From: Thalia democratica
Lineage: Eukaryota
DNA length: 64,000 bases
Direction: 5' to 3'
NCBI GenBank assembly: GCA_965202585.1
Contig: OZ241826.1
Coordinates: 74,090,001-74,154,000 of the forward strand
The notes under the pieces are model-generated. The model was not told where the DNA came from. It was given only the letters and a program-made list of their open reading frames with translations, and did no database searches. The translations under genes and the position numbers were made by a program. The stretch's first letter is position 1. Every line of letters starts with the position of its first letter. This document shows, in pieces, positions 8,466 to 64,000 of this stretch.

Positions 8466-10238
8466 ATGCTTTCTGTGTCCCTAGGTAAGGAGTTTTTCGA
8501 ACACCAAATGTACATAGTTTAAAAAAAATTAGCAGGGAAATTAAAAGCTTAAGGATAAAACTGACACATTTTATGCAGTTTGTTTTAAGGGGGAACGATT
8601 TCTTAAGCGTTCCTCTCCAAGCATCATCCTTATCTGACTTGTTTAAATGTACAAGTTTGAATTTAACTGAATTTGATCTGTTTTAAGCACTTTTAAAAAG
8701 TGATTTCTATCTTAAACTAATTAGTGCTAATTAGTTGTAGCTAGTACTTGTAATAATAACTTGTTATATAAAATTTGTACATTTTAGGAAAACTGAAACT
8801 TGGTGGATTGAAAAACTTGATTTTTGCATTGAAAACAAAGCATTGTATTTTAATTGATGAAGATAAAGAACATAAGATATGCAACGCTTTAAAAAGAAGA
8901 ATTGACGTTGACAACGTATTAGCGGTTTATTTCTTCGCGTACTTGTTTAAACTCCCAAGTTTATCCAAGCTTTCATTGAGGCTCATCGAACGGTGTTTCT
9001 CAATAGTTTCTGGTTCACCAGACTTCTCCTACTTGGACGTAAGATGCGTGGCAGAAATACTTTCAAGCGATGAGCTGGACATCGATTCGGAGATGGAAAT
9101 TGCCCACATTGCAGAAAGCTGGTTGCTGCACGACGATGCACGTTGCAAGCACGCGCGGCGCCTTTTGTCGAAAGTTCGCTTACAGCTGTTGTCGACTGCC
9201 GCCTTGAAACAAGTTCTGAACAAACCGTGTTTCAACGTGAGCATTTATGAAGCCGAAGTCGGAGAAGCAGTAGCAGTTCGGTACTGCAGCCAAAACAACT
9301 ATGACGTCATAGTCGGCGGAGGTTATACCACCGAAAGTAATTTTGCTTCCTTCAATGATGTTTACGGGGTCGACGTGAACACTTTCAATGCGAGAAGTTT
9401 CTCAGAATTTAAAACGGCGCGGTCCAAATCTAAGATGTTTTGCGTAAAAGGCCAGCTTTACGTTTTTGGCGGAGTGCAAGCCGTCAAAGGGGTCGACAAA
9501 CCGGTTATGTCCGTGGAAAAGTTCTCGCCTCGCGCCAACGCTTGGCAAAATGCAGCTGAAATGTACGATGGCCGACGTTGCTTCTCCGCAACCTGTTTCA
9601 TGGGCGACGTTTACATAATGGGGGGATTCTTTTGGAGATTTCAGAGAGGAATTCAAGCGGAAGCAACCAACTCTTGCGTGAAGTTCAGCTTCGAGAGCGG
9701 GAGGTGGACGGAAAAGGCGCCGATGAAAGTTGCGAGGCATGACGCTGCAGCCGCCGTCTTCCTGGGAAGAGTATACGTTTGCGGGGGATCGTTTCGCATG
9801 AAGAGCGGCGAATACTACGATCACGTGACTGACTCGTGGTCGCGCATGGGTGATTTGGTCGAGGGAAGACACGAACATACGCTGGTGGCATCGGGGGGTA
9901 AGCTGTTGGCGTGCGGCGGATTGTCAAACACTTCTGTCGAGGTGTACGATCATTCGTGCGACAAGTTTTTTTTGATCAGCACGCCACCGCAACTCTCTGA
10001 CTTGACCATTTCTTCCCCCGCCGAGGCCGTGACCGTCGGACGCAAGCTTTTTGTTTTTACCGGTTTCAGGGGCGCGGTTCTTGTCTTTGACACCGAAAAA
10101 GGCGAATGGACGGTGGAAAAGTGTAAATTTCGAAAGGGTTTGGCGAAGTACAGCTGCGTTAAAATGCCGCATTTTAACCAAACCGCAGCAAAAAACAACC
10201 ATCTGAACCAGAGATCGGCAAACTGCAATATATTTTAA
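8466..10238 (+). CDS. Kelch-like protein (BACK plus about 6 Kelch blades, BTB core absent); exons 8466-8484 and 8788-10238
   Basis: The ORF-track frame begins at TTG and has no in-frame ATG for about 100 codons. ATG CTT TCT GTG TCC CTA G|gtaagg (donor 8485) splices in phase 1 to ttttag|GA AAA CTG (acceptor ends 8787), giving MLSVSLGKLKL. BACK motif LSSDELDIDSEMEI..W..VRLQLL. Kelch GG/W motifs: LYVFGG..SVEKFSP..W, VYIMGG..W, VYVCGG..YYD..W, LLACGG..VEVYD. Confidence 0.85.
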
Positions 10239-15017: not shown

Positions 15018-16036
15018 TCAACATTTTTTGTATTTTAAGAGGAGCTTTTTCATATGTCGAAATAACTTTATGAATTTAATCCTCTTATTTAAAATACCAT
15101 CCTTTTTTAACGCATACATAACGGCTGTTGATTCTTTTAAGCACAGCCTACAAACAGGATTTTTATCATTTCCTATTGGCTGCGCTCTTTTTATCACCTC
15201 CCTAGTTAATTTAAAATCAATGTTTTTGTACTTCAGGCCGCAAACATACTTCGAAAGCTCAGCCTCATTTTCGTATACACCACCTTTAAAAGATTTTTTA
15301 TGGTTAGCATACCGAAATCTGAAGTGAGTTGAGCATAAGCCGATGTAGAACTTATTTTTAAGGTCAGAGTTAACTGTTGCTTTGTAAATAATGTTCTCTG
15401 AACGGCAATTACCCCTTTTCAAATCATATTTACAGCCACCAGCGCAATTACACTGATTTTTGATCAAATTACTTTTGTTTAAAACCCTTTGATTGTGTGA
15501 CTTAATTAATCTCTTCAAATTCGCCATACGTGAATAACTGATTTGCATATTATGTTTATTAAAGATCTTTGATAATAGGTTATTTTAGTTGAAATGTTCT
15601 TTTTCTAGATTTATAAATTCTCTGCCAATATTTGTTTTGACTGAAGCTCAAAATGGAAGATTATACCAAATTATATTTCGCTTTCTTTTATTTCTATTGG
15701 TCGTTTTGTTTTTTTCACTCCGTTGTTTCAACATTAAATTTATCATTGTAACCGCATTTTTTTGTTATTAATTCTTACTTTGTCTTTAAAAAGTTTTCTT
15801 CGTTGCTTGATCTTTTTTCTAAATGTTTATTATTTATATTTGGTGTTTGTTTTATAATATTTTTTTGGTAGCTAGAAAATTTATTTATATACATAAATTT
15901 TGCGTTTTGCTTTTTATAAGGCATATGGGAGAGATCATACAAGTTGAACTTCTTCAAATCTATGGGTTTACGAGTCTCTGTTGAACCACCAATGTTGATG
16001 ACTGACTACCTGGATGTAAAGCTCAACTTGTATGAT
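15018..16036 (-). mobile_element. 5'-truncated Penelope-like retroelement (RT thumb plus GIY-YIG endonuclease, Neptune-like)
   Basis: 15018-15548 reads CNC..GC..CRSENIIYKATV..FYIGLCST.FRFRYANH..CRLCLKE, a PLE GIY-YIG domain with a Cys-rich linker. 15775-15957 reads FNLYDLSHMPYKKQN..YINKFS, a PLE RT thumb. An inverted RT piece (DYLDVKLNL) lies at 15961-16036 on the + strand. Confidence 0.8.
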
Positions 16037-29855: not shown

Positions 29856-31421
29856 ATGCAAGAAAGTAGTGCATCAGAAGCAGATATTGATAAAAAGACT
29901 TTAAATATTAAAACTAAAAAAGACATTCAGACTGAAGATGAATCTTTGCTAGTGCGTCTGAATAAAGATCATGTTTTAGCAGTAAACAAAGAAAAGTTGC
30001 TTGCTAAGTCCCAATATTTTAAGTTGATTACCAAGTCTTGTTTTGCAGATCACAAGTCAGAGTTTACTGAAGTATGTGTTCCAGTGGGCATTGATGTTTT
30101 TAAAAGGGTGATGATAAATTACATATTGTCTGACAACATTAGTATTAATAATGAAACTGTTTTTGAAATATTTCAAATTTCGGACTACTTACAAATTGAG
30201 TGTTTAAATAAGATATGTTGGGATCATTTCGTGTATAATCTTAACAAAAAAACATTGAATGATCAAATAAGTTTAATGGAGAGTTATCCATTGTTGAGAA
30301 AAGACTTTAAAGAAGTAGCATTAAAGTTTAAAAAAAGTGCAAGGCCAGCTGTTAAGGGTTTGTACGTGTTTGAATACAGCAATAGTATATATGGTAAGTA
30401 TTACTTTCGACTAGTTACTGACGATCATGATTATCCAATAAACTTTAACAATACAAGAGACTGTTATTATATTAGTTCGTTATACTGTTTTAGTAACAGC
30501 ATAATAATGCACAGTTCTTTTAATCTATTACAATTTGATCTGTTAAGTAGAAACCTACATAAAATTGATATAGGAGAATGTCAACAAATCAATGTTTGTT
30601 ATGACAATAAGAACTTGTTTGTTGTTACTTCAACACAAAGTGAGTTTTCTTTAACATTATTCAGTAAAAGTTATTATGATACAGTGTTAAAAGCTTGTAA
30701 AACAAAAACATTTGATTTTTCAAACAAAAAGATTCCTGATTCTGAGAACAATAATGCTTACATCTTTTTTACAGTCTGTGATGGAGGTAAGCTGTACATT
30801 TTATACATTACTTATTACAAACATATTAAAAAAGATATGAATATTCTTGATTTTTTTCATAATGTTCACCTAGTCACCATACACATTGAAACAATGACCA
30901 TTGTGCGCAATCAAAAATTGACAAAAATTTTAAGGTACAATTCAGGAGGAGTTTTAACACAAAAAGAAAGCGTTAAAAAACGTTACATAGAAGTTGAAAT
31001 GTTTAAGAAGATGTTTTTTATTAAAAGCACACACAAAGTTGTAATAAAAATAGACATGCATGACAAGTTGGTTTTAGTGTTTGATATTAAAAATGATCAC
31101 TTTTATTTTGTTCAAGACATGATACCTCACCCACAAAAATACAATGATGATTACTGTATTGTTCATGACAGGGCAACGCCCAAGTACACAGTTGATAAAG
31201 ATGATTTAGTATACATCTATAAAAAGTATGAACCAATTTGTGGTGATACAGAAATTAAAGAAATAAAAAAGTATTTTACAGCAATTAGTGAAGTAAGAAA
31301 ATATCAGTTCTTAGATGATAGACTGGTGGATGCTGGTATTGTGTGGGAGTGCAAGTATGATAGAATAAGCAAGTACACTGAAAATGTTAACCCAAGAGTT
31401 GAGTCCATTTGTATTGTTTAA
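29856..31421 (+). CDS. BTB/POZ-domain protein, paralogue 1 (521 aa, intronless CDS, divergent beta-rich C-terminus)
   Basis: Open ATG-to-TAA ORF with a BTB signature, VNKEKLLAKSQYFKLI..F.D..EV.V..F..MINYI..NETVFEIFQISDYLQIECL..C. AATAAA lies immediately after the stop. Confidence 0.85.
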   Translation: MQESSASEADIDKKTLNIKTKKDIQTEDESLLVRLNKDHVLAVNKEKLLAKSQYFKLITKSCFADHKSEFTEVCVPVGIDVFKRVMINYILSDNISINNETVFEIFQISDYLQIECLNKICWDHFVYNLNKKTLNDQISLMESYPLLRKDFKEVALKFKKSARPAVKGLYVFEYSNSIYGKYYFRLVTDDHDYPINFNNTRDCYYISSLYCFSNSIIMHSSFNLLQFDLLSRNLHKIDIGECQQINVCYDNKNLFVVTSTQSEFSLTLFSKSYYDTVLKACKTKTFDFSNKKIPDSENNNAYIFFTVCDGGKLYILYITYYKHIKKDMNILDFFHNVHLVTIHIETMTIVRNQKLTKILRYNSGGVLTQKESVKKRYIEVEMFKKMFFIKSTHKVVIKIDMHDKLVLVFDIKNDHFYFVQDMIPHPQKYNDDYCIVHDRATPKYTVDKDDLVYIYKKYEPICGDTEIKEIKKYFTAISEVRKYQFLDDRLVDAGIVWECKYDRISKYTENVNPRVESICIV

Positions 31422-33507: not shown

Positions 33508-35034
33508 ATGCAAGAAAGTAGTGCATCAGAAGCAGATATTGATATAAAGACTTTAAATACTAAAACTAAAAAAGACATTCAGACTGAAGATAAAACTTTG
33601 CTTGTGCGTCTGAATAAAGATCATGTTTTAGCAGTAAACAAAGAAAAGTTGCTTGCTAAGTCCCAATATTTTAAGTTGATAACCAAGTCTTGTTTTGCAG
33701 ATCACAAGTCAGAGTTTACTGAAGTGTGTGTTCCGGTGGGCATTGATGCCTTTACAAGGGTGATGGTAGATTACATATTGACTGAAAAAATTAGTATTAA
33801 AAATAAAACAGTTTTCGAAATATTTTTAGTCTCTGACTATTTACAAATTGAATGTTTAAGCAAGTTGTGTTGGGATCATTTCGTTTACAATCTGAACAAA
33901 AAAACTTTAAATGGTCAGATAAACCGAATGAAAAACTATCCATTGTTGAAGGACAATTTCATGGAAGTAGCATTGGAATTTCAAAAAGGCGAAAGGCCTT
34001 CTGTTCAAGGTTTGTATATGTTTAAATACAACAAAAACGGGTATTATTTTCTTCAAATTACCGGTAAAGAAGGTTATTCTGTTAAGTTTAACAAATATAC
34101 TTACAAAGATTATTGTTTACTACTGTACTTTAATAACAGCATAATAATGCAAGGTTATTACAGGAGTCCTGTTTTGCTACAGTTCGATCTGTTAAGTACT
34201 GACTTGGTTAAAATTGATTTAGAATATAGTCACCAGTCAAGTGTTTGTTCTAACAACAAAAACTTGTTTGTTGTTACCCCAATAAAAGATGAGTTTACAG
34301 TATCAATTTTAGGTAAAAAACATTATAATGCAGTGTTGGAAGTTTTTGAAACAAAAACATTTTGTCTTTTTAACGAAAGTAAACCTGGTGTTGAAAAAAA
34401 AAATATTCACATCATTTTTTCATTTTATGATGAAAGAAAACTGTACTTTTTTTACATGTTTTACAAATATATTTATTTTAGTAAGAGTATTATTGATTAT
34501 GTTCAAAACATCAAGATGGTCACCATACAGATTGAAACAATGACTGTTATCAGCAATGAAGAGTTGACAAACAAATTAAGATATAACACGGGTGGACCTT
34601 TGACACAGAAAGAAAACATCAAAAAAAGCCATGCGAAAGGCATAATGTTCAATAAGATGTTCTTTTTCAAGAAAGCACACAAAGTTGTGATAAAAATAGA
34701 AAAGCATGACAAGTTGGTGTTAGTGTTTGATGTTAGAAATGATCATTTTTATTTTGTTGAAGACATGATACCTTATTCAACCATTGCAAATGATAATTAC
34801 AGGATTGATTACAATGATATCAAGTACGCGGTCGACAAAGATGATAAGGTACACATGTACAGTCATGATGAAATCAATTCTGATGTAACACAGCATAGTT
34901 TTACTGAAAGATGTGAATTACGAACGTTCAGATTTAAAAGCTCAGATGATAGACTGGTAGAAACTGGTAATGCTCTGAAGCGCAATTATGTTGACAATGA
35001 TCGCCCATGTGTTAAGGCCATTTGTAGTGTTTAA
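33508..35034 (+). CDS. BTB/POZ-domain protein, paralogue 2 (508 aa)
   Basis: Tandem duplicate 3652 bp downstream of paralogue 1, with the same BTB signature. Possible 5'-UTR acceptor ttttttacag ending at 33456. Confidence 0.85.
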   Translation: MQESSASEADIDIKTLNTKTKKDIQTEDKTLLVRLNKDHVLAVNKEKLLAKSQYFKLITKSCFADHKSEFTEVCVPVGIDAFTRVMVDYILTEKISIKNKTVFEIFLVSDYLQIECLSKLCWDHFVYNLNKKTLNGQINRMKNYPLLKDNFMEVALEFQKGERPSVQGLYMFKYNKNGYYFLQITGKEGYSVKFNKYTYKDYCLLLYFNNSIIMQGYYRSPVLLQFDLLSTDLVKIDLEYSHQSSVCSNNKNLFVVTPIKDEFTVSILGKKHYNAVLEVFETKTFCLFNESKPGVEKKNIHIIFSFYDERKLYFFYMFYKYIYFSKSIIDYVQNIKMVTIQIETMTVISNEELTNKLRYNTGGPLTQKENIKKSHAKGIMFNKMFFFKKAHKVVIKIEKHDKLVLVFDVRNDHFYFVEDMIPYSTIANDNYRIDYNDIKYAVDKDDKVHMYSHDEINSDVTQHSFTERCELRTFRFKSSDDRLVETGNALKRNYVDNDRPCVKAICSV

Positions 35035-38450: not shown

Positions 38451-39473
38451 TTATAAAACTAAATGTTCTGAAATAGATGAACGTTTAGATGCGTTTAAAA
38501 CCTTAACCGGTATATCATCTTTCTTATCTGACAGGAAAAAATTCTCTACACATTTTGGTATGTGTTCTTTTATTCTCTTCCTTAGATGTCTAGTTGTTAA
38601 TCCAATATAACTTGCTTTACAACAGCAACTATACTGGTAGATTACCATACTTTTATATTATTTTGATACTGGATCCTTACCACCTGGTGTTATTAGTGGT
38701 TTAGAGGTAAAAACAATTCTAGGGTTCGCTGCATAATAAGTATTTCTTACTAGTTGTCTAATTTTCTTTTCTAACATCTCTGAGCTTTTATTAATAAATG
38801 GAACTTTTAAAGTAACTACACATTTTTTCGGTCCTATTGTCTTTATTCTATCCAAATTTTTCACATGTAAATGAATTGTTTTGTTAACTAGCTCTTGTGG
38901 GAAACCGTTTTTGTTTAATAGTGTTTTGACTTGTTTGATTTTACTTAGTAGCAACTCTGGGGAACAAATTTTGTGTGCCTGATGACACAAAGTTCTTATT
39001 AAATTTACTTTTCTTTGTAAACTGCAGTTTGATTGAATATTTAAATAACATCCTGTAAAAGTTTTCTTTCTGTACACAGAAGTTAAAAATATTTTTTCTT
39101 TTCGTTTAATTTGTACGTCTAAAAATGCAAGTTCACCATTGTTTTCCTTTTCTATTGTGAAGTTTATAGAATCATGAGCATTATTCAAAATATTAAAGAA
39201 TTTATCCTTAGTTTTCTCGCTTTTAAGTAAAACATAACAATCATCCACATACCTTAGATATGATAAATTATTTTTGGACGCAGGAACAACTTTTAATTCA
39301 ATATAACCCATAAAAATATTTGCTAATGTTGGTCCAAAGGGGGATCCCATGGCTATCCCGTCTTGTTGTGAATAAATTAAGGAATTAAAATTAAACTTGA
39401 CGCCAGAAGTTTCGAGTTTCAAAAGTTTTTTAAAATTCATTCTGCTAATTGTAGGTTTACTTAACTTAAACAA
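38451..39473 (-). pseudogene. PLE reverse transcriptase plus GIY-YIG endonuclease, interrupted by in-frame stops
   Basis: QQDGIAMGSP.GPTLANIFM, YLRYVDD, FLDVQI and SVYRKKT are RT motifs. An in-frame TAA at 38658 is followed by MVIYQYSC..YIGLTTR.L..RIKEH (GIY-YIG). Confidence 0.88.
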
Positions 39474-41137: not shown

Positions 41138-44100
41138 GTTAAGACCTATTTGTAATAAAAACTAAAAAGCATTTGGAAAAAATCAAAAGTGTTATTATGA
41201 GAAGTAAAACGTTTATTTTAATTTATACTGTTTTTCAGCTCAATACCTAAATTTTTATCTAGAGGAGCACTTTCTAAGTTTCTTAAAAGCTGTGTACGGC
41301 ATATTACTAAGAATGAATTTCTGTCGATATCAGATTATAGTTTTTTATATAAGTAACGGTTTAATTGTGTTTATAATTGTAAAATGTGTGAAAACTGACA
41401 AAGTAGGTTTGTTTTAAAAGTAATTATTTAAATATACGTATAAATGATCATTTAAAAATACTTGCTATGTAAAATAAATTAAGCGTACATTTTGAAAAAA
41501 AAAACACACCTATCTAAAATATACTTGTTTAATTTATTTTTGTCTCAACTATTCAAATGTAAACAGCTTTTTTTCAAACATTAAGCTTTTATGAAAAAGT
41601 TGTTTCTATTATATACTTCTTATGTTTGTTAAACGATAAAAAAACGATTAAAATATTTAGTCCTTGGACCTGGTGCACGAAGAACCTTTCGATTATCGAG
41701 TTGCACACCACGGGTAGCTTTAAATGTCATGTACAGGACTTGAATTAAATATATTTGTACTTAAATCAACAGATTTACAAAGTTTTTTTTTTAAGTATCT
41801 TAGCTATCTGATTTGTTTTTTTCATCTAAAAACTATTTCTGAATTATTATTTTTTTAATATTATTTCCGAAAAAACACGTTTTTAATAATTTTTACAAGT
41901 TTATTTAATTAACTGTGATTGGATTTCCTTAATTTGCTTGAAGTTATTATAACTTATTACCTAGAAAAAGCTCCACTAGATGGTATGGATTCTTTTACTT
42001 GCATCATTTAGAACCATATTGTTAAAAAACAAATTTAACGGCGAATTCATTAGAACTGGCAGCTGTATTTGTGGTAAAACTCTTAATTTTGTTTCTTAAA
42101 GTCTTTTAATTTTGGATATGTCGTATTAATCAATCTAACAGCGGAATTTCACTCTGTTGAACACTAAAACAAAAAAGTTTAATTTTATTAAGAAAAAAAA
42201 CATTCGCTCTGTTAATAAATGTAACAATGTCATTATTTTATAGTATAACATGTTTATGTAGGTTTTATGTAATCATTAACCTTTAACAAATATAAATATA
42301 CTAAAAAAGTAAAAATGTTTCAAGATGTTTTCAATTTATAACTAATATCTGTAAAATAAGGCATTGTGTTACATTATCGGTCTAATCATATTTTATTATG
42401 TTTTTATAGTTCTGTTAAATTTTGATAATTTTTTGTTAAAATGACTAAAGTAAACTGACATACTTAGCGTTTAATTTGATTTAACAATTTTAAAGTTAGT
42501 TGTTTTGAATGTGTGACTGACTACAGATAGTTAATTATTAACTAAACGTGCTTCATGTTAAAATTTTATTTTTGTTTTTTCAGAAATTTCAATTAGGTTT
42601 TTTTATGGCTAAGTGTTAAAATATTTTTCACAAAGTTTTATAGGTTTAGTTTTCAAATAAATTTAAGATGCTAATAGTATAAATTTAATTTATTTAAACG
42701 ACAGTACTACATCGATTACTTTCAAAATAAAAAGATCAAATATTAACTTGTTAGTATGCATGACAATATTAAAAAATATATATTAAAAATAATTAAGATT
42801 TATTACAAAAAAGTGTTGGAATTTAGTAGACGGCTTAGTTTTTAAATCAACTTGAAATTACATTATATAGAAAGTATGATTTGAATAAAGAAAATTTCAG
42901 TATTAAACTAAAATATGATAATGAATTTTTAGTGTTTTTTTTTATCTTTAATGGTCTGTTTGCTCATAAGTAAGATTAACCTTTAATTTTTTTCGTTGTC
43001 TGTATAAATTCTTTACTGGCTTAAAATTACTATGTTGATAAGAATAAGTTTAAGCTGTGATAAGGTTTCATCAGACCATAAGCCTTCGATAGAAAATCTT
43101 AAAATAACTTTAACTTGACTTTCGGAATATGAAAGACTCGTTAGACTTTTACCGATGTTTTCTTTGAGAATAACCTTAAAGTAAAGTTTTATCACTCAGT
43201 CTTACCATTGATTTAACAGCATTATTATTTTTAAAAGTTTGTAAACAATATTTTTATGTGAACTTTTAGAATTGATAATGAAAATTGTAAATAAGAGTAG
43301 AAAAACAAAGTTATTAAAAGCTTGAAATTTTTTTAGTTCAAAAAAACAGCTGTAATAAAAAGCATACAGCCTTGAATAATAAGTTGCGATCTATTACATA
43401 CTAGTTGTGCATAATAAAAACTTGTGATATGATTTCATCAAAAGAATCTGAATTTTTGTAAATTTGATACACCTTAAGAAAAGTTATTCAACTTTGAACT
43501 TTATCAAATATTTATAATAATTTTTGCAATGTTTATTTGTATTTCGCAAAAGTAAACTTTGACTTACCTCTACAGTTTTATTTTCTCCTTAAACTATTTG
43601 TGTTGCAAGAGTTTATGATTAACAAAAGCAAATATTACACTTATGTTTAAAATGAAGCTTGTTTTGAATTAAAGTCAGTCGTATAAATTACAATCACCCA
43701 GCCTAAACTAGTTAGTATTGTTTACTAATAATTTTTTATTTATTTCAATACTTTTATGTAATACAAGGCGTAAATAGTGATATGCTAAATAATTGCTAGA
43801 CGTTTTATATAAACTCAAAGACTATGCTTGCTAGACAATTCACCTCAAATTAAAAATAAACATTAAATTTTTATACAAAATTACAGAAATATAAACCTAA
43901 ATAGCAAATATTATATTTTGTACTAAGTTTCAAACTAAACAACAAAACTCTCATCACATAGTAGTTTTTATGAGTAGTTATGATATATTTTTGTTTTAAA
44001 TTAATTGTTTTACTAAATTAAGTAACTTTATATTACTACAATCTTTTTTTTTTGATGCACTTGATTTAAAGAATTATAACTATTTCTAATGATAAACAAA

Positions 44101-45834
44101 TATATTTGTAATTATTAATAAAAATAAGTAAGTTTTTTGAATATAACTAAACAGGATATACTTTGTTTGCTTAAATACCTGTCAACAAAAGCTTTTAAAC
44201 TTAAAACACGCCTTTCATTTTCTCATTGAAATTTTATTTGTATTTTTTCTGTTTATTGTAGTTCTGATTTTTTTCAATGTTTTTATTAGTTTAGTTTCGT
44301 AATTTATGTAAAGTATTAAAGACGTTTAAAGTTTATAATTTGCTTTAAAACTATGTGTTTAAATTTTTCACTGTATTTTGTCAAATAATTTTATACATTA
44401 AACTTTTCGCTTTTGTAAAAGCTGAACAAAAGTAATAAAAACTAAGAATTCAATAAATATTTTTGATAATTTAAAAGTATTCGAATAAAGAAGTTAGTTA
44501 AGATAAATTAATGACAGCTGAAAAAAAAAATTTAAAATATAAATACGTTTTTTTTTTCAGAAAAAAAATCTATTGAAAGTTAGTCAAGCATACAGTAGTT
44601 TCAATGAAGGAAATAATTTATATTACTTTTTTTTTGTTGTGCTCTAGTATTTCTAATTATTTTGTTTTTTAGTATATAAACGAATAAGATAAACTTTATA
44701 CTTTATATATTTTAAATTTGTAAGTGAATATTGAACTAAAAAGTTTGTATAGTTTAGCACTGTTAAAATAAATAAATCATTATGTTTAAAACTTTTTTTG
44801 ATTAAACTTATTTGTGCACAAAACTCAGGTTTAACAATCTGTAGAAATTTTTGTTTGTAGAACAGATCACTTAGTTACTATATAAAAAAAAAGTTAATAA
44901 TTGAATATCTTACCGAACAAATTCATATTTCGTTCCTTAATATTTGTTTTATATATAGTATTATAACTGTTTTATTGAGATTGTAAGCCAGAGCAAGTTT
45001 TATAAAATATATCTTATTAAAATATTATTATGTATAACTATTCAATCTAGGATTTTATCATTATACTACAATGTTTTATCCATTACTGATTTGTCATATA
45101 TTTATAAATGTGAAAATAAAGTTTGTTAACATAAACGATGTAATATTAACGTATCATACAGGTAAACAACAAACAGCTACTACATAAAAGTAAATAACAC
45201 ATAATCAATATGCTAAAGCATTAAATAAACATTGTACTGTACAGTTATAATACTAAAACTTATGTTTTAATATAACTTAAAAATTATAGGACTAATGTAG
45301 ACATAAAGTTTTTTATTTTTTTATTTTTACTAATAAGACTACTAAAAAATAATAACATTGTTGTTAATAAAAGATAAATACTAAAACTGTTCTTTTTTAA
45401 AAATAATTTAGAAATCTGAAGTATAAAAACATTCAATATTTTAAAAGCACAAATAAAAATATACATACACCAAAAATTGCCTTTTTCAAACAGTAAGGCA
45501 AGACGAAGATTTATATGGATTTAAAATTAAAGATGCAAATCACGTTGTTAAAAAGCAAGTATTTTGGTTATTACCAAGTTAAAGAAAAACTTTTATTCTG
45601 AATAATTATCTATTTTGTTAATGCTATATTTATTTTTTTAAATTTTAGTTCCTGCATAATTTTTTTGTATTTCTTTTGTCTACTGAGTTATATTTGCCAT
45701 TTGTTTTGTTCTATAATCTCTAAATGTATTTAGATAACTTAGTTCCGTTACACTTCTTATTTTATTATTGTTCATGTGGTCTTTGTATTTAAAGTACATT
45801 GATCATTTTTACTTAAAATATGTCATTTTTAGTA

Positions 45835-46196
45835 GGGTAGGTGTCTAAATTGCACAAAGACAAAATTGCACGAAGACAATTTTGCACGAACAGACAATTT
45901 TGCGCTGAGACATTTTTGCGTGGGTTAATTTTTTTATTAATTTTGTTTTTTTTGTTTATTTTTTAACTATCACACCCCTAACCCTTAGTTATCTTTTTCT
46001 TGTTTACTCTTACTGTTACCTCTAACCCTTACCCTAGGTCAGTAACTTTTTCTTTTTTTTTATAGATTTATCCTTTAGTTTTATTTTCTTCTTTTTTCTA
46101 TACTCTTGTGCGAAAATGACCCTCTGTGCAAAATTGTCTTCGTGCAATTTTGTCTCCTCTTGCAATTTTGTCTTCGTGAACTTTTGAACCGTTCCG
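45835..46196. mobile_element. MULE-type TGCACGA MITE
   Basis: Ends GGGTAGGTGTC and GAACCGTTCC, with TGCACGA/TCGTGCA arrays and CCCTAACCCT motifs. The TSD is not clean. Confidence 0.7.
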
Positions 46197-46284
46197 TTTT
46201 ATTATAATTTGCTAACAGTATTTAAATTATTTTTGACATAGCTTTTTTTCATAGTGAGTAAATTAAGTAATTGAGTACCAACAA

Positions 46285-47475
46285 ATGGAACGCAACGCTT
46301 GGAAAGTAGCCAGAACAACGCTTAAACGTTCCCTGGAAGCCCAATTTCCAAACAGTGACAGCTTAAGTCTTAAAAGGTCTCTGACCTCCACCATAAACAC
46401 CAATTTGGTCTCGCTGACTAACGCTTGCGTCAAAGCCGATGACGTCAGGAGCGTAAACGTCAACATCGGTTTGCTAAAGAGCTCCTTCATCGATTTGGGA
46501 AATCTGAGAAACAAGCATGTCAACATCACGTCAATGGAAAACTGCGAGCTCAAGTTCGGGGAAATTCGCAACTGCCACGTCACCATTGAAGGCGTCTCAC
46601 GCAGCACTCTTGTTTTCGGGGAATCACGGAACAGCCACTTCAACTTCGGAACCATGTGCTGCGGCGACTTGCAGTTTGGAGAAATGAGAAACTGCCACCT
46701 CAACGTGCAACGGATAAGCGATTATGACGTCGCGTTCGAAGACGTCCGTAACTCACACATCAATGTAAACAGCGCCAGTGACGTAACTACCACGTATAAC
46801 GGGGATTCCCGAAACAGCCACTGGAACGTTCCGAGCTCCTTCGAACGACCACTGTCCAGACCTTCGTCGAGTTCCGGGGGCTTTAGTTTTGGAAACGTGA
46901 TGGTCGGGGGCAACGTCAACGTAAGAAACGTCGTGATAGGTGGGGTAGGCCAAGACGAGGTCACGATAAACGGCAGAATCGTTTCGTCCACTCAAAACGT
47001 TTTCAGATCTGGTAGCAGCCGCGGCACGGTTATTATCGGCGGCAGCGTCATAGTCGGGGGTAATACCCGCTCCATAAGCTTGAGGAACAATGGGAGCAGC
47101 GGAACTGTCACTATAAACGGACGGACGGTTGATTCGAATGGCGGCAACTTGGTGATAAACAACGGCAACGTGCGATCCGTCTCTTCCGATGACTCTTGGT
47201 CTGACAGCTCCGACATATCTTTCGATAATTTTGACGAACTGATCAACGACAGGCCGGCGAGAGGCTTGACGAGCGACCGGATCGGCCGGTTCGAGCAGTT
47301 CACCGCCGACGCGTCCGCGGACGGGCAGCAGTGCGACATCTGCTTCGACGACCTGGTCGCTCACGAAACCGCGATGGTCAGGCTGGACTGCAGTCACGTG
47401 ATGTGCCGGAAGTGCGCGGGTAAATGGTTCGGTGAGCACGCCACTTGCCCCACCTGCCGACACGCGTTTGTGTGA
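46285..47475 (+). CDS. RING-finger (C3HC4) E3 ligase with N-terminal 20-residue beta-solenoid repeats and a Gly/Val/Asn-rich middle (396 aa)
   Basis: C-terminal C-x2-C-x15-C-x-H-x2-C-x2-C-x10-C-x2-C, including the conserved W (GKWF) and CPTCR. RN(K/C/S)H recurs every 20 residues in the N-terminal half. Confidence 0.85.
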   Translation: MERNAWKVARTTLKRSLEAQFPNSDSLSLKRSLTSTINTNLVSLTNACVKADDVRSVNVNIGLLKSSFIDLGNLRNKHVNITSMENCELKFGEIRNCHVTIEGVSRSTLVFGESRNSHFNFGTMCCGDLQFGEMRNCHLNVQRISDYDVAFEDVRNSHINVNSASDVTTTYNGDSRNSHWNVPSSFERPLSRPSSSSGGFSFGNVMVGGNVNVRNVVIGGVGQDEVTINGRIVSSTQNVFRSGSSRGTVIIGGSVIVGGNTRSISLRNNGSSGTVTINGRTVDSNGGNLVINNGNVRSVSSDDSWSDSSDISFDNFDELINDRPARGLTSDRIGRFEQFTADASADGQQCDICFDDLVAHETAMVRLDCSHVMCRKCAGKWFGEHATCPTCRHAFV

Positions 47476-50319
47476 GTTTTTGAATCAGGTGAAAAATCGC
47501 TTGTTTGGTAAGTTTTATTCTCTTCTTTTAAATTTAAGCTTTTTCATTATTAACAACATTATGTACTAGAGTTTTTAAAATGTTTTTATTTCCAATTTTT
47601 AATTTATTTATTTTAGTTCTTGCAGGAGTTTCTTTGTCCATTCTTAGAGCTTGCTTAACTGTCGGTTTGTTTGAAAATATTTTTAAGCGAAAATAAATTG
47701 TTCACTTTAGAAATTTATTAAAGTTTGATTCAGTATTACAAAAATTTTTCCAACGTTGTAACATTAAAAATTTTTAATAGTTTTTGTTGTGATCTTTGTT
47801 TGATTTAAGTTTTATAAGTTTGGTTTGACTTGATAACTTTTAGTTCTTTTATTCTAAGTTTGAAGTTTTTGGTGTTTGTCAATAGAAAATTTCTAAAAGT
47901 TTTAGATTAATCTTTCTAAAATTATAAAATGTTTTAATCATTTTAGTAAATGACACTTAAGTGTCGTTGAAATTCCTGGCAGTTTCAAACTAAAAAGCCT
48001 GTGTTTTAGGAGGTTTGATCATTTCCTTGTTTTCTTACAATTCTTTATTGATCTGGTCATAACCTAAAACTTAATAACTAAGAAAATATGTTTTTGTAGA
48101 CAAAATTAAAGTTGTTTTTACAGTATGTAATTTTTTTTTAAATAAATTCTTCAAAGTATTTTTACGAAACTTTATATAGAAGAAAGTAACAAAAAAACTC
48201 AATTTAATTGCAAATTTATTTGCTGTTATAACAATATTAACAAAATTATATTCAATTAGCGTTTTTAAAAAGTGATTCATAGTATTTTTATATAGATACT
48301 TTTTAATATTAAACTGCTTACATAAAAAAAATTATTGTTTTCATTCTTTTTCTGTACTGGTTTTTAGCAAAACTTTTGAAGTTTCATTGTCTGATATTTT
48401 TTATCAATTATCGCTTTATTTTGATAGTTTGAAGTCTTGTTCTATCATGGTTTTCTAACTCCTTTATTCTTCCATTATATTTAAAGATTGTGAGTTTATA
48501 CACAAAGGAAACTTTTATTTCGTTTAGTCTCATATTTTTAAAAAAATAACTTTTATTAAAGTAATTAGATTTTAAGATTATGATTGATATAATTATTTTA
48601 AAAACTCAATATTAATCATATCTATATACCTTATTAAGTTAAGACCAGTTATTATATTCTTTTTTAATTTTTAAATTGCAAAAAAAAATATAAAAAATAT
48701 GAAATATGTCGTAAATTTTAAATATAAAAACACTAACATGTTTATTGAAAGTGGGTTTAATCGAACAAAAATGAACATTTTTCTACAACAAGTTAAATGT
48801 ATAAGTTAAAAATTTTTAGATATAAAGAATGTAAAATATTTATTTATAAGTATTGGTCTATTTATTTGTTTTAAGGATTTAGAAACATTTTACGCAATAA
48901 ATTAAAAAACGTTTTAAAAGAAAAGCTCCCAAAAACTAAAAACTGCTTTTACTTTTAGTTGTTACGTAACAAGTTAAACAAACAGAAACTGTCTGTTGAA
49001 AAAATTAAATTCCATTTATGCGTAATTTAAACATAAAACCTTGAATAACTGAAAGTTTTTATGTTTATGATATGTACATGTTATCAAATCTTTTGAAAAC
49101 AAATACTTAATGTTTAAAAATTTTATAAATATCAAATAACAACTTCTTAATTCAAATAAATGCAAGCAATTAAAAAATTTTTGTTTTGATTCTTAGCTTA
49201 AATTAAATCGTCTAAAAAGAAAAAGATTTGAAATTGTATATTTTTAATAAGAGTAAGTTTTTACAGTATAAAACTAACTATAAGTCGTTTGTAAGTTAAT
49301 GGTAAATATTATACATTTTTTACGATGTATATAACGCTAAATGTTACATATTTAGTAAGCATCTTATAAATTTTTGAATCTATATTTTTTATTAATTACT
49401 ACAAAATAAAAGTGTTATAACGTTACAAAAAATACTTGTAATCATAGACTGAACTAGTGAAAATTGAAAAAACTATTATTCAATAAAAACATAAAGCTGC
49501 AAGCGTTTTTGATATTAAGTGAGATAAATCACAATATTGAAAATAAATTAATAACTGAAAAATTATTAACTAAAACAATCATTACATCTAAGACAAACGT
49601 TTTAGAAAAAATTAAAGAAATATTTACTGAGCTAGATTTTTAGTTTTATTGTTACTAGCTTTTAAACTAATTAGTGATTTTGCTCTACGTATAGTTCTTT
49701 TCGAGTTAATTTTTTAACAAGTTGTCCAGCAGACAAAAATTTATAAGTTAAATTTTTAAATAGTATAGCTGCAATACATAATTTAACTTTTGTTTTACTA
49801 TATCAATGACTTAGAATAAATTAAAAAAGGTTTCTAAATTCAAGAAATATTTAGAATCCCAACAAAGTAAGAAAAACTTTTTATTTTGTTACGTTTTTAC
49901 CTAGAGTTCGTTTATAAGATTTTTTGGCTAGAAATATTGATGAAAACTTATTTAAAACACTAATAAAAAGTTTTTTTAAAAGCCTAACTTAAAATTATTT
50001 ATTATAAATGATTAAATATCATAACAGGAAGTCTTCATATACTTTTGCTTCTTTACCCACACTGTTTTTAAGTACATTAAAGCTTAGATTAAAGTATACA
50101 GTTTTTTTTCACTGATTGAAATGAACTTCTTATTTTTTGGATTTTTACTTTCATTTGTAGCTGTTAATCAGTCAAAATTAGGTGAAATTGTTTAATTTAT
50201 ATAAACTTAAATACTAATTTTTAAAGTATTGCTTTAGAACTTTTTTTGTATTGGAATCTTTCACTTTTTAAATTTATATAAAAAAATTGTAATCTGTTTC
50301 AATAAAATCTATTTTACAG

Positions 50320-62400: not shown

Positions 62401-63433
62401 AGTGGCGTGATTCTTGAGTAACCCAGAACGAGTGGTTGATGGGTTCTAAATTCCCCAATTGAAGTTCGACATCCGCGCTACCAATAGGGTGGGTTGTTTT
62501 GTTACCAAACCCTTGGATGGTTCTACTTTGTTTGGGAAAATATTTGTCTATCCCGTTAGTCAATTCCTTCGGCAGGATTGAAATTTCGGATCCGCTGTCA
62601 ACCAAAAAAATGACATTTGTGTTTGAATCCGCTACAAATAGTAGGCCCTGAGGGAGGTTCTTCGGTTTGGGTGCAGGGAATTTATTTAGTTGAAATGTCC
62701 ATTTTTTTACACTTTTATCTTTGTTGTGATTGGTAGTGTCGAGAGATTTTTGTTGTGATTCCGGCTGCGTTTGCGCTGACCGTTGGGACTGCCCGTTGTG
62801 GTGCTGGCTAAGGTAGCTCGGATCGTTGGCTCTCGTCGTGGAGGTGCTGGCTTCGGCGGCGCTGACCGTTGACGCTGGCCCTGGTGATGCTGGCTGTGTT
62901 TGCGCAGACCGTTGGGACTGCCCATTGTGGTGCTGGCTAAGGTAGCTCGGATCGTTGGCGCTTGTCGTGGAGGTGCTGGCTTCGGCGGCGCTGACCGTTG
63001 ACGCTGGCCCTGGTGATGCTGGCTGTGTTTGCGCTGACCGTTGGGACTGCCCGATGTGGTGCTGGCTAAGGTAGCTCGGATCGTTGGCGCTTGTCGTGGA
63101 GGTGCTGGCTTCGGCGGCGCTGACCGTTGACGCTGGCCCTGTTGATGCTGGCTGCGGTTGCTCAGAACTTTGGTTCTCATCAGGTGTTTCTGCTGCACTA
63201 CGTGAGGCTGTTTGCTTTATATGAAAAGTCATCTTTGGTTTGTTTGAAGGTGTGGACACTTCATTTCCTGGATGACTTATAGTGCAGTTTGAGGCATTTC
63301 TGGTTGGTCTCGGTTGAGATGGGGGTTGCTGTCGAGGGGCGGTTTTATTTACCAATTGGACAGCTCTTGCGTGAGATAGTGTAGCCCCAATCACTCTCCC
63401 TCTCACTGCAGAGAGTTTGGGATCTCGTTTTTT
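59420..63433 (-). CDS. pol: Ty3/Gypsy Pol (protease, RT, RNase H, integrase), expressed by -1 frameshift
   Basis: Uninterrupted 1328-codon frame: FLVDSGSEIS (PR), LDLKEAYY and YLDDILIYS (RT), FSDAS..ELTG..IRSDN (RNase H), HQVLH..CLQC (HHCC), VHMDLIGP/VSDNGKEF/NGFIERQHR (DDE) and YHGPYRV (GPY/F). The PR-RT-RH-IN order is Metaviridae. Confidence 0.95.
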   Translation of the reverse strand, partial: KKRDPKLSAVRGRVIGATLSHARAVQLVNKTAPRQQPPSQPRPTRNASNCTISHPGNEVSTPSNKPKMTFHIKQTASRSAAETPDENQSSEQPQPASTGPASTVSAAEASTSTTSANDPSYLSQHHIGQSQRSAQTQPASPGPASTVSAAEASTSTTSANDPSYLSQHHNGQSQRSAQTQPASPGPASTVSAAEASTSTTRANDPSYLSQHHNGQSQRSAQTQPESQQKSLDTTNHNKDKSVKKWTFQLNKFPAPKPKNLPQGLLFVADSNTNVIFLVDSGSEISILPKELTNGIDKYFPKQSRTIQGFGNKTTHPIGSADVELQLGNLEPINHSFWVTQESRHFGIIGMDLLRKNELAILPSTSQLCKMGSNESARLFAPAELPTPIVASVNHINLGGKNTTPLEEKCKRLLMDFPEITRKPTYHAKPKHNYELEIILDNYKPAMVKARRPGGRRAAIQDHFNDLLYRGVVTRGEATEGASPVTCVQKKDGSMRVCIDYTTLNKATRPLSFPLPRIDELAQIIPGGTRYFTNLDLKEAYYSLPLAANSQKCAAIIVHSGVFIPNRCVFGLKNAPMKFQQVMEALLRECEDFTYVYLDDILIYSYTEEEHIYHVRKVFETLSKYGLFLNVKKTTFAKSKLEFLGHVIGVEGINVQASKVAAIKEYPVPITRKDLKRFLGMANYYHSFIDGLAEILAPLSAISGGPKKTNRTILKLDDSHIKAFEDTKTALANAATLSFEDQGKPLILFSDASDTHTGASLEQLNDKNVMVPLAFFSRSIPENKRARCTYYKELTGLAMAIKHFHSRIYGRQLIIRSDNMALCNALKKELTDQSPYVQRHLQRIQEYSPTVIHVKGTDNVVADALSRPPQAATMYMGRYETDPDYEEMWYPDSEDEVSEEESMEIEEEIITPERIDRNSLALLQQSEPDLIETAQTLKKVVEFSKPENIAEIVEVGNKRAILPESLRLQAFNAAHQVLHLGVEKSIDAVAKDFWWPTLRADVTRWVKTCLQCQAVKVIRHNRPKIGFFPETTTRLSFVHMDLIGPMNVVSNNCRYVLTIKDRGTGFLVATPIPDKRAITVRNAFMQSWCSYFGTPQVVVSDNGKEFANQLLSDAFIQLGVDHRFVPPYSPQSNGFIERQHRTINQALRAEKTKTNWALRLPMITATINNTSIEGSPYTPSQYALGMCANLSGQIFVDKKVEDGKFEYNHSDTRLFLNIMSGITRKHQRHKERKEYYEPSLFQCEKVWVKRANKKKLSTVYHGPYRVLHASEHSMFIQKNGGVVKVSIRNVKAYYPREELEESKCDEIPENRYNLRERKKVINWDKVINCQEESSSDEN
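62760..63155 (-). repeat. Three 129-bp (43-aa) tandem repeats in the gag-protease spacer
   Basis: GATGCTGGCTG recurs at 62886, 63015 and 63144. Peptide unit QPAS(T/P)GPASTVSAAEASTSTTSANDPSYLSQHH(I/N)GQSQRSAQT. Confidence 0.95.
63386..63433 (-). promoter_or_regulatory. -1 programmed ribosomal frameshift signal
   Basis: Heptamer A AAA AAC in the gag frame (63427-63433), 5-nt spacer GAGAT, then stem-loop CCCAA-ACTCTCT-(10 nt)-GGAGAGT-GA-TTGGG. Pol is in the -1 frame with no ATG at its start. Confidence 0.8.
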
Positions 63434-64000
63434 GAATGAGGCTGAGATATGGTTTGATGGTGCATACTACATCTCCTGTCAAAACAGGAACGGGTATTTA
63501 CACCAAATCTCTGATGGTTTCTGCATATAAATTCATTGTTGTTAATGGCTGTCCATTGCTGCTGTGCTTGGGCTGGTCTGTTTTGATTTGAGCGCGGGGC
63601 ATTGCTATAGTTTATATTCCTAGCTCGTCCCATTGCCTCTTGCTCATTTGTGTCGAGCATTACTTTCCAAGCAATTTGAAAGTCTTTGTCTTTCAGGTGA
63701 AGCTTCTCCCGTAAACGATTTTTTAAACGAGGAGGTGCTAAATGTATTGTGAGAAATTTTGTTAATACACCTTCATTTCTGAACTCAGCTAACCAATGAT
63801 TAATCTCATCACCTAGTTCCCTACTTGACATGGAGTGCCTGTCAGCTCTTGCCAGTAGCACGTTGCTTACTCGCTCTTGCCCACTCATTAGGAACTCTTT
63901 CAACGTGTCGTAGTTCATATCTTCTGGTTTATATCTGTGGTAGTAGCTCTCTCTCTCTTTCCAGGTCACTAATGTTTCAAGCAGCCTGTAAAGATCTTGA
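63403..64000 (-). CDS. gag: Gypsy Gag, C-terminal part (frame open to the window edge), CsRn1-like CHCC knuckle
   Basis: The frame is open from 63999 (QDLYRLLETLVTWKERESY..) to TGA at 63403. C-RN-H-x9-C-x4-C matches the CHCC gag motif described for the CsRn1 clade. Confidence 0.85.
   Translation of the reverse strand, partial: QDLYRLLETLVTWKERESYYHRYKPEDMNYDTLKEFLMSGQERVSNVLLARADRHSMSSRELGDEINHWLAEFRNEGVLTKFLTIHLAPPRLKNRLREKLHLKDKDFQIAWKVMLDTNEQEAMGRARNINYSNAPRSNQNRPAQAQQQWTAINNNEFICRNHQRFGVNTRSCFDRRCSMHHQTISQPHSKNEIPNSLQ

Follow-up and report, generated by a model that had tools for sequence, protein, structure and literature searches.

Is an open reading frame (ORF) that joins a regular 20-residue repeat to a RING domain a working gene, and if so, what would the repeat contribute to a ubiquitin ligase? 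The question is raised by an ORF of 396 codons at positions 46285-47475 of the forward strand (translation 46285-47472 plus stop) in a window of 64,000 nucleotides from Thalia democratica (assembly GCA_965202585.1, contig OZ241826.1, positions 74,090,001 to 74,154,000), the window being the whole stretch of DNA that was analysed. Base composition is 21-30% GC over most of the window, which has a few GC-rich islands, and the ORF lies in one of them. An initial interpretation made from the letters and translations, here called the sequence-only reading, proposed a RING ubiquitin ligase (E3) fused to a beta-solenoid. The answer preferred here, held with moderate confidence, is that the locus is a functional gene of two exons, whose product would be a single-chain RING E3 of the cytosol or nucleus, belonging to an expanded RING family and binding its target or a partner through the solenoid.

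The two-exon gene is real. It consists of a non-coding exon 1 (43546..43710, +), an intron in the 5' untranslated region (UTR) (43711..46254, +) and an exon 2 (46255..47877, +) that carries the entire coding sequence and the 3'UTR and whose 3' end may extend to about 48274. The structure was obtained from three transcript contigs (L017-L019) that belong to a close relative. In these contigs the initial 166 bases map to 43546-43710 at 92-93% identity, and the alignment resumes at 46255, skipping a span of approximately 2.5 kb that begins with GT at 43711, finishes with AG, has the termini GTTAGT...CATAG and contains 22% GC. Contig L017 matches exon 2 at 91% over 46255-47877, with a weaker alignment onward to 48274. 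An in-frame TGA is located at 46255, and the start ATG at 46285 is in a good context, with A at -3 and G at +4. A single coding exon is thus preceded by a spliced, non-coding leader. The orthologue P0001 has 394 residues, is 93% identical overall and is coded by three short contigs from one JGI sample; it was the sole relative returned by a region-restricted search of 5.8 billion proteins.

There is good evidence that the gene is transcribed in the close relative. Contigs from two marine metatranscriptome runs, differing by approximately 3-5%, cover 46283-47743, and the depth over the gene in the relative's metatranscriptome is substantial. Within the intron, metatranscriptome contigs sit only on a high-copy repeat. 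Evidence for transcription in the source species itself is suggestive: run X6, a small run from the source organism, yielded a contig of 1,538 letters over 46299-47811 with four differences and a contig over exon 1 (43566-43752) with zero differences.

The intronic high-copy repeat lies at about 45738-46238, a short way 5' of the coding exon, and a 16/34-bp tandem array (46121-46186) forms part of it. It is found at very high contig depth in every run, RNA libraries included, with many rearranged joints. Two antisense ORFs (46263-46703 and 46753-47463) lie opposite the gene.

The RING (residues 346-396 plus stop; 47320..47475, +) is the only domain of the protein that Pfam recognizes. The identification made in the sequence-only reading was confirmed by the zf-RING_2 model (PF13639), which matches residues 348-392 with an E value of 3.8e-11 and 43.5 bits against a cut-off of 27.3; six Pfam RING models in total scored above their cut-offs. 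All eight zinc ligands of a C3HC4 pattern are present (C350, C353, C369, H371, C374, C377, C388 and C391) and are invariant in the orthologue. Their spacings (2, 15, 1, 2, 2, 10, 2) fit the cross-brace formula C-x2-C-x(9-39)-C-x(1-3)-H-x(2-3)-C-x2-C-x(4-48)-C-x2-C. Residues I352, W381, P389 and R392 align with positions of RNF4 and RLIM that contact ubiquitin or the ubiquitin-conjugating enzyme (E2). In a sequence search of the PDB the RING end matched RNF4 (8.7e-11) and RLIM (3.9e-8; query residues 320-395, with the RGLT..I motif included).

As in RLIM (RNF12), RNF4 and Arkadia-class ligases, the RING is placed at the very C-terminal end. The pre-RING motif 'RGLTSDRI' aligns with 'RGLTKEQI' of RLIM (RGLT-x-[DE]-x-I) in the 25 residues before the RING, and the 'CPTCR' with its linchpin Arg is the same as in RNF4. 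RLIM has a RING-H2, whereas this protein has the C3HC4 ligand pattern. No similarity to RLIM or RNF4 extends beyond the last 80 or so residues, and the likeness does not establish orthology. Only five residues follow the last Cys, and the SUMO-interaction motifs and dimerizing tail of RNF4 were not seen. Inspection of the translation by eye, with no predictor run, showed neither a signal peptide nor a membrane helix, which fits an intracellular ligase.

Two regions lie between the repeat and the RING. Residues 186-300 (46840..47184, +) are basic (isoelectric point (pI) 12), rich in Gly, Ser, Val and Asn, and built from two copies of a unit of approximately 45-50 residues, with the motif G-T-V-T-I-N-G-R occurring twice. 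In the full-length AlphaFold2 model this region has predicted local distance difference test (pLDDT) scores of 23-35, and modelling it in isolation gave an average of 47.8; the best Pfam match had an E value of 0.16, and no match was found in the ESM Atlas. Residues 301-345 (47185..47319, +) form an acidic, Ser/Asp-rich linker (pI 4.05) and the pre-RING segment 'RGLTSDRIGRF', a motif found also in RLIM and, in an alignment with 15 paralogues, in the RING family of this genome.

The C-terminal 75 or so residues have matches at no fewer than 105 further loci, at 42-63% identity (HMMER; 1,498 first-look candidates in the 802-Mb genome). Exact TCPTCRH sites number 96, against one for a reversed-pattern control, and most are in tandem clusters on contigs C2, C4, C5 and C8. 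The shared C-terminal module comprises RGLTSERI (RGLT-x-E-x-I), MVRLDC and WF..H.TCPTCRH, at the end of a single open frame. The paralogues examined are single open frames of about 130-540 residues, with unrelated low-complexity or tandem-repeat N-termini, for instance Asn/Arg/Gln-rich or Arg/Gln/Leu/Glu-rich. The gene in the window resembles them in being a single-open-frame coding sequence with a repeat N-terminus. It differs in being dispersed, the sole exact-motif site on its own contig, where the paralogues are mostly clustered; in its canonical C-x-H, where the paralogues have C-H-V-D-H (a two-residue insertion by comparison); in the GC content at third codon positions (GC3), which is 0.68-0.82 against 0.19-0.42; and in its solenoid N-terminus, which is single-copy in the genome and present in none of the RING paralogues. 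From its sequence, the gene appears to be a divergent, dispersed member of this large, expanded RING family. A search with a small paralogue returned 24 relatives. Every one is an unnamed protein on a short ENA contig and none comes from an annotated genome, which fits a lineage-restricted family, known so far from this genome and from environmental contigs. Two marker searches of the genome for tunicate cellulose synthase (PF03552 and PF01341) had no match; the second had none in any control genome either, and neither is decisive about the taxon.

Dense clusters of RING copies occur at 15.08-15.33 and 66.54-67.01 Mb on C2, 77.15-77.43 Mb on C4, 69.9-70.17 Mb on C5 and 21.8-22.0 Mb on C8. Within one cluster the copies differ chiefly in the length and type of the N-terminal repeat.

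The repeat follows a basic N-terminal segment (residues 1-50; 46285..46434, +; pI 10.4) for which two helices were modelled at low confidence (pLDDT 31-45). The predicted beta-solenoid of seven 20-residue coils occupies residues 51-185 (46435..46839, +), a delimitation based on periodicity, the AlphaFold2 model and structural matches, and the seven in-register repeats span residues 51-191. The seven strings listed in the sequence-only reading were all recovered from the translation, and the spacing given there was borne out by the R-[NS]-x-[HN] motif, whose seven copies begin at residues 55, 75, 95, 115, 135, 155 and 176; successive copies are 20 residues apart, except that the last follows after 21. 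The unit consensus is h-G-[ED]-h-R-N-x-H-h-N-h followed by nine variable residues with hydrophobics at positions 14 and 19; a Phe precedes the Gly in the core F-G-[ED]-x-R-N-x-H-h-N-h. Over residues 41-190 there are 36 identities at lag 20 against a shuffle mean of 8.3 (sd 2.7, max 21), with none of 20,000 shuffles reaching 36 (z ~10), together with 29 at lag 40 and a smaller peak of 17 at lag 10.

Conservation over the units is highest for the Arg (7/7), followed by the next Asn, the His and the second Asn at position 10 (6/7 each); hydrophobic residues occupy positions 1, 4, 9, 11, 14 and 19. The ladders are formed by E/D, R, N, H and N, of which the acidic ladder at position 3 and the second Asn ladder at position 10 had been overlooked in the sequence-only reading. 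The same reading had described a second strand of ten residues with alternating hydrophobics, but this half of the unit varies between coils and does not alternate cleanly. Every ladder residue is unchanged in the orthologue P0001. The solenoid is slightly acidic, with a pI of 5.8 and 12 K+R against 16 D+E.

The units are old copies, because they have diverged to mean identities of 45% (nucleotide) and 29% (amino acid) and no DNA-level tandem array was detected in the solenoid-coding part by Tandem Repeats Finder. The invariant Arg is encoded across the seven units by AGG, AGA (twice), CGC, CGG, CGT and CGA. Six different codons for one residue indicate that it has been kept by selection and not by recent copying. 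Weak matches to the N-terminus within the same genome (E values of 0.002-0.27) were rejected as translated satellite DNA with 10- and 20-residue periods, and not paralogues. Satellite arrays with periods of 60 bp and 30 bp, at L015 (C1:15042636-15046004) and L014 (C5:70003244-70006555), have several reading frames that stay open for hundreds of codons, and both gave weak false matches to the solenoid.

AlphaFold2, run on a two-sequence alignment, modelled residues 60-185 at pLDDT 75-91, nearly all as strand and broken only at the N-x dipeptide (positions 6-7) of each unit. Everything outside these residues, the RING included, had a pLDDT below 50 in the full-length model, as a shallow alignment can give. 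The trimmed model was compared with known structures, and according to the guidance of the tool, tied Z scores among repeat folds indicate the fold class and not the family. Matches included a phage tailspike (Z 13.5, root-mean-square deviation (rmsd) 2.9 Å, 152 aligned residues), TBCC (9m1m_C; Z 13.2, 3.0 Å, 126 residues aligned of a 164-residue chain), a Ca-dependent antifreeze helix (Z 12.5, 2.1 Å, 118 residues), the CARP domain of CAP1 (6fm2_B; Z 12.2, 2.6 Å, 118 residues), pectate lyases (Z about 11.6, rmsd about 3.2 Å, 155 residues) and pentapeptide-repeat proteins (Z 10.2-11.7, 3.8-5.7 Å, 163-173 residues). The 20-residue-coil solenoid anticipated in the sequence-only reading is therefore supported by the confidence of the model and by matches to right-handed beta-helices at Z 11-13.5. 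The pentapeptide structures superpose worse on the model (3.8-5.7 Å) than do the three-sided helices (2.1-3.0 Å), and their Z scores do not exceed those of unrelated beta-helices.

No family assignment was obtained from shape. Foldseek returned nothing below an E value of 0.001 for the solenoid model in the PDB (best 0.055) or the AlphaFold DB clusters (best 1.1e-3, at a TM score of about 0.1). In the ESM Atlas, the shape search gave best TM scores of 0.31-0.32 (bactofilin and an unnamed archaeal cluster), with nothing assignable, and the feature search gave no usable match for either repeat region. A PDB sequence search with the solenoid alone returned only lactoferrin matches, with E values of about 1, which were discarded as chance.

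It is unlikely, on balance, that the solenoid has diverged strongly from a known family while keeping that family's function, whether that of the pentapeptide family (DNA-mimic type) or that of CARP/TBCC (binding of actin, tubulin or Arl GTPases). The likeness to C-CAP and cofactor C drawn in the sequence-only reading was reasonable, with TBCC (PF07986) the top Pfam match of the domain alone (E value 0.0094, pairing residues 58-110 with profile positions 3-53) and both TBCC and CAP1 among the best structural matches. The Pfam score of 16.2 bits is, however, under the cut-off of 24.8, the locus was not among the matches in a TBCC profile scan of the whole genome at E values up to 1, and BLASTP gave no match between the solenoid and the TBCCD1-like TBCC-domain gene of the same genome. 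The structural scores of TBCC and CAP1 are tied with those of the tailspike and the antifreeze helix, and with the pectate lyases added they point to a fold class only.

For the pentapeptide family the arguments are the exact 20-residue coils, the hydrophobic residue at every fifth position (4, 9, 14, 19) and sequence matches. When 1.8 billion representatives were searched exhaustively with phmmer, the matches included, besides the orthologue and repeat noise, the genuine pentapeptide proteins P0003 (E value 1.2e-8) and P0006 (4.3e-6); the latter gives a gapless alignment of 118 residues with the solenoid (pairwise E value 5e-11). Alignment scores to five phmmer targets were 84-111, against 35 +/- 7 when the 20 unit columns of the query were permuted in the same way in every coil, and the observed score was reached by none of 200 permutations for four targets and by one for P0007, but the targets were pre-selected by similarity to the query, which biases this control. 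Only P0003 and P0006 among the five are confirmed pentapeptide proteins; P0005, P0007 and P0010 are 10-residue repeats whose matched part has no Pfam family. The phmmer matches P0002, P0004, P0008 and P0012 were set aside as tandem-repeat noise, as was P0009, a near-perfect 10-residue tandem array. Against membership, the Pfam Pentapeptide model (PF00805, cut-off 20.2 bits) did not match the domain by hmmscan at E values up to 10, and the locus is absent from the 120 matches of a whole-genome scan with PF00805 at E values up to 10. By the families' own models, the solenoid belongs to neither TBCC nor the pentapeptide family.

How the ladders are oriented bears on what the solenoid could bind. 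On the expected in/out pattern, the hydrophobic positions 1, 4, 9, 11, 14 and 19 should face the core, Arg5 and the acidic position 3 would be exposed on one face, and His8 and Asn10 would be exposed on the next. The first Asn (position 6) probably sits in, or caps, the corner between the Arg and His faces, because of the in/out pattern of the residues and because the modelled strands break only at N-x. The conserved half of each coil would thus present two adjacent polar faces, the other half being variable, an arrangement compatible with a binding or interface surface. The ladders are equally compatible with structural roles, namely Glu-Arg salt bridges, stacking of His and capping of turns by Asn.

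Somewhat more doubtful than the family account is the proposal that the solenoid is a self-association scaffold, forming end-to-end or side-by-side oligomers that cluster RINGs and boost activity instead of selecting a substrate. CAP-type CARP helices and pentapeptide-repeat proteins are known dimers, the hydrophobics at unit positions 1 and 11 exceed the needs of a square pentapeptide core, and the short tail after the last Cys leaves the RING without a dimerizing tail of the RNF4 type. The conserved half of the coil is nevertheless dominated by polar and not by hydrophobic ladders.

The sequence-only reading had gone further and suggested that stacked rows of Arg, Asn and His recognize a repetitive ligand (a nucleic acid, a glycan, a filament or amyloid) and link its recognition to ubiquitination, so that the protein would be a pattern-recognition E3. 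This proposal must be considered improbable, a shade more so than the scaffold. It draws on the conservation of four polar ladders (E/D, R, H and N) in old repeats while the rest of the coil varies freely, and on the position of the gene within a fast-diversifying RING expansion, as is often the case in immune-type E3 families. Opposed to it are the mild acidity of the solenoid, unlike that expected of a nucleic-acid binder; the probable placement of Arg and His on either side of a corner, and not together on a single flat face; the structural roles that account for the ladders equally well; and the behaviour of a single-copy gene that has changed slowly between two species, with no sign of an arms race.

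Comparison of the two species gave an overall ratio of non-synonymous to synonymous substitution rates (dN/dS) of 0.39, based on 28.5 non-synonymous changes in 913 sites and 20.5 synonymous changes in 266. The Gly-rich region (residues 186-300) has the lowest value of all segments (0.22), followed by the RING segment (0.25) and the solenoid (0.61), whereas the N-terminal 50 residues and the acidic linker are at about 1.2-1.3. The reading frame is uninterrupted over 396 codons in both species, and identity is approximately 96% in the coding sequence against 91-93% in the UTRs.

The coding sequence contains 53% GC, with a GC3 of 0.675 overall and 0.82 in the RING part, against 0.19-0.42 in the RING paralogues. 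Its own intron and 3'UTR are at 22-23% GC, and the composition drops to approximately 20% right after the stop codon. The enrichment is unexplained; candidate causes are codon selection, biased gene conversion and a retrogene history. A foreign or viral origin was rejected on account of the spliced 5'UTR intron, which is conserved in the relative, and of the RING module common to approximately 100 host paralogues. A GC3 of 0.74 in an intronless actin-related ORF at another locus of the genome (L038) shows that GC3-rich coding sequences occur here as a class.

The least probable account is that the gene is young and lineage-restricted and has little specific function, if any, its repeat being a by-product of tandem duplication that happens to fold and has been kept within a family forever producing new N-termini: two very large protein collections yielded a single orthologue, the paralogues carry many arbitrary repeat N-termini and two segments have dN/dS values above 1, but the overall dN/dS and the intact frame in two species, the retention of ladder residues in old repeats through synonymous change, the depth in the relative's metatranscriptome and the strong codon bias confined to the coding sequence all speak against it.

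The preferred reading, a single-chain RING E3 with a binding solenoid, accommodates these results as follows. The C-terminal RING and the RLIM-like pre-RING motif would recruit and activate a ubiquitin-charged E2, and the N-terminal, seven-coil, right-handed solenoid would serve as the target- or partner-binding module. Binding would take place through the half of the coil that is conserved in all seven units, with acidic and Arg rows on one face, Asn at the corner and His and Asn rows on the next face, and the Gly/Ser/Asn/Val-rich and acidic regions would act as a long, flexible spacer between solenoid and RING. The solenoid may have arisen from an old internal 60-bp duplication, in a gene born in a lineage that has repeatedly joined one RING module to new repeat domains. 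The analysis establishes the gene structure, its transcription in the relative, the repeat, the intact RING, the family setting and a confidently predicted solenoid; E3 activity, a recognition role for the solenoid and the exposure of particular residues are inferred.

Several points weigh against this reading. Only two sequences exist, so the alignment given to AlphaFold2 was shallow and the RING was modelled poorly. Ladders in solenoids can be purely structural, and their conservation alone is no proof of a binding face. The dN/dS of the solenoid, based on 10 changes only, is not clearly under 1. Expression in the source species depends on the single run X6, the kind of which is not on record.

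A bolder extension, about as improbable as the pattern-recognition proposal, would make the solenoid a new beta-helix family in which the conserved acidic/Arg and His/Asn ladders provide a regular recognition surface for some repetitive polymer, be it cellular or foreign. The protein would then be the first RING E3 to select its targets with a solenoid 'ruler' and one product of a tunicate-style system that obtains new E3 specificities when fresh repeats are fused to one RING module.

If the preferred reading is right, the protein is a compact, natural RING ligase whose recognition part is a short, regular beta-solenoid. The genome illustrates a way of making many candidate ligase specificities from a single RING module and newly made repeat domains, and a seven-coil solenoid of 135 residues with fully regular polar ladders could be of use as a small scaffold in structural studies or in design. 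Since the gene is lineage-restricted and has not been assigned to any family, its wider biological importance is uncertain and probably modest.

Elsewhere in the window, two tandem paralogous, AT-rich ORFs of 521 and 508 residues (29856-31421 and 33508-35034, +) have a weak N-terminal BTB match (E values of 1e-5 to 2e-6) and no other recognized domain. A GC-richer ORF (8775-10238, +; GC3 0.55) encodes a BACK domain and Kelch repeats; no BTB was recognized in the frame, and an upstream exon may supply it. A Ty3/gypsy-type long terminal repeat (LTR) retrotransposon at 59420-63969 (-), with 46-48% GC, contains an intact pol of 1,328 residues (protease, reverse transcriptase, RNase H and integrase) and a gag-like frame of 188 residues. 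A reverse-transcriptase fragment (RVT_1, E value 1.3e-7) is located at 38658-39473 (-). A Cys/Lys-rich ORF of 176 residues at 15018-15548 (-) has no Pfam match and, by eye, resembles the GIY-YIG-type endonuclease of Penelope-like elements.

The placement of a beta-helix on ubiquitin-ligase machinery is not new in principle. F-box proteins of the FBXO11 type carry a CASH-domain beta-helix. In the bacterial effector ligases SopA and NleL, a HECT-like domain is combined with a parallel beta-helix thought to bind the substrate (PMC4822128), and the Cul3 adaptor KCTD9 has a pentapeptide-repeat helix that serves a ubiquitin-ligase complex (PMC6019787). SopA/NleL and FBXO11 have a HECT-like domain or an F-box, not a RING, and no sequence relation to the present protein, so that the analogy is one of architecture only. 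The direct RING-solenoid fusion and the sequence family of the solenoid turned up nowhere in the searches made. Sequence, fold and literature searches linked neither the solenoid nor the complete architecture to any characterized E3, in agreement with the sequence-only reading, which had not recognized the combination, and searches of the literature on E3s with a RING and a beta-helix and on tunicate RING expansions yielded no description of this architecture. The combination was not found among characterized RING E3s, the known analogues using HECT-like, F-box or BTB domains.

The solenoid itself can be compared with two beta-helix families. The CARP domains (TBCC, RP2 and the CAP C-terminal domain; PF07986/PF08603) are, like the predicted solenoid, right-handed beta-helices of six to seven short coils and of similar size. 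The repeat motif of RP2 and TBCC, which we take to be h-x-[DN]-C-x-N-C-x-h-x-h, resembles h-G-E-h-R-N-C-H-h-x-h here. The coil period of CARP domains is 17-19 residues, against the strict 20 of this solenoid; no single arginine-finger context was identified in it, and the Pfam score and the comparison with the genome's own TBCC-domain gene set it apart as well. The pentapeptide proteins (PF00805: Qnr, MfpA, the SV2 luminal domain and KCTD9) have exactly 20 residues per coil in common with it. Their consensus A-[DN]-L-x-x is matched by the solenoid's G-[DEN]-h-R-N on one of four faces, whereas the other three faces are far from the consensus and positions 1 and 11 hold extra hydrophobics. The solenoid is predicted to be right-handed, with 20 residues per coil and a 10-residue sub-period, combining a modelled shape like that of CARP with a period like that of the pentapeptide proteins.

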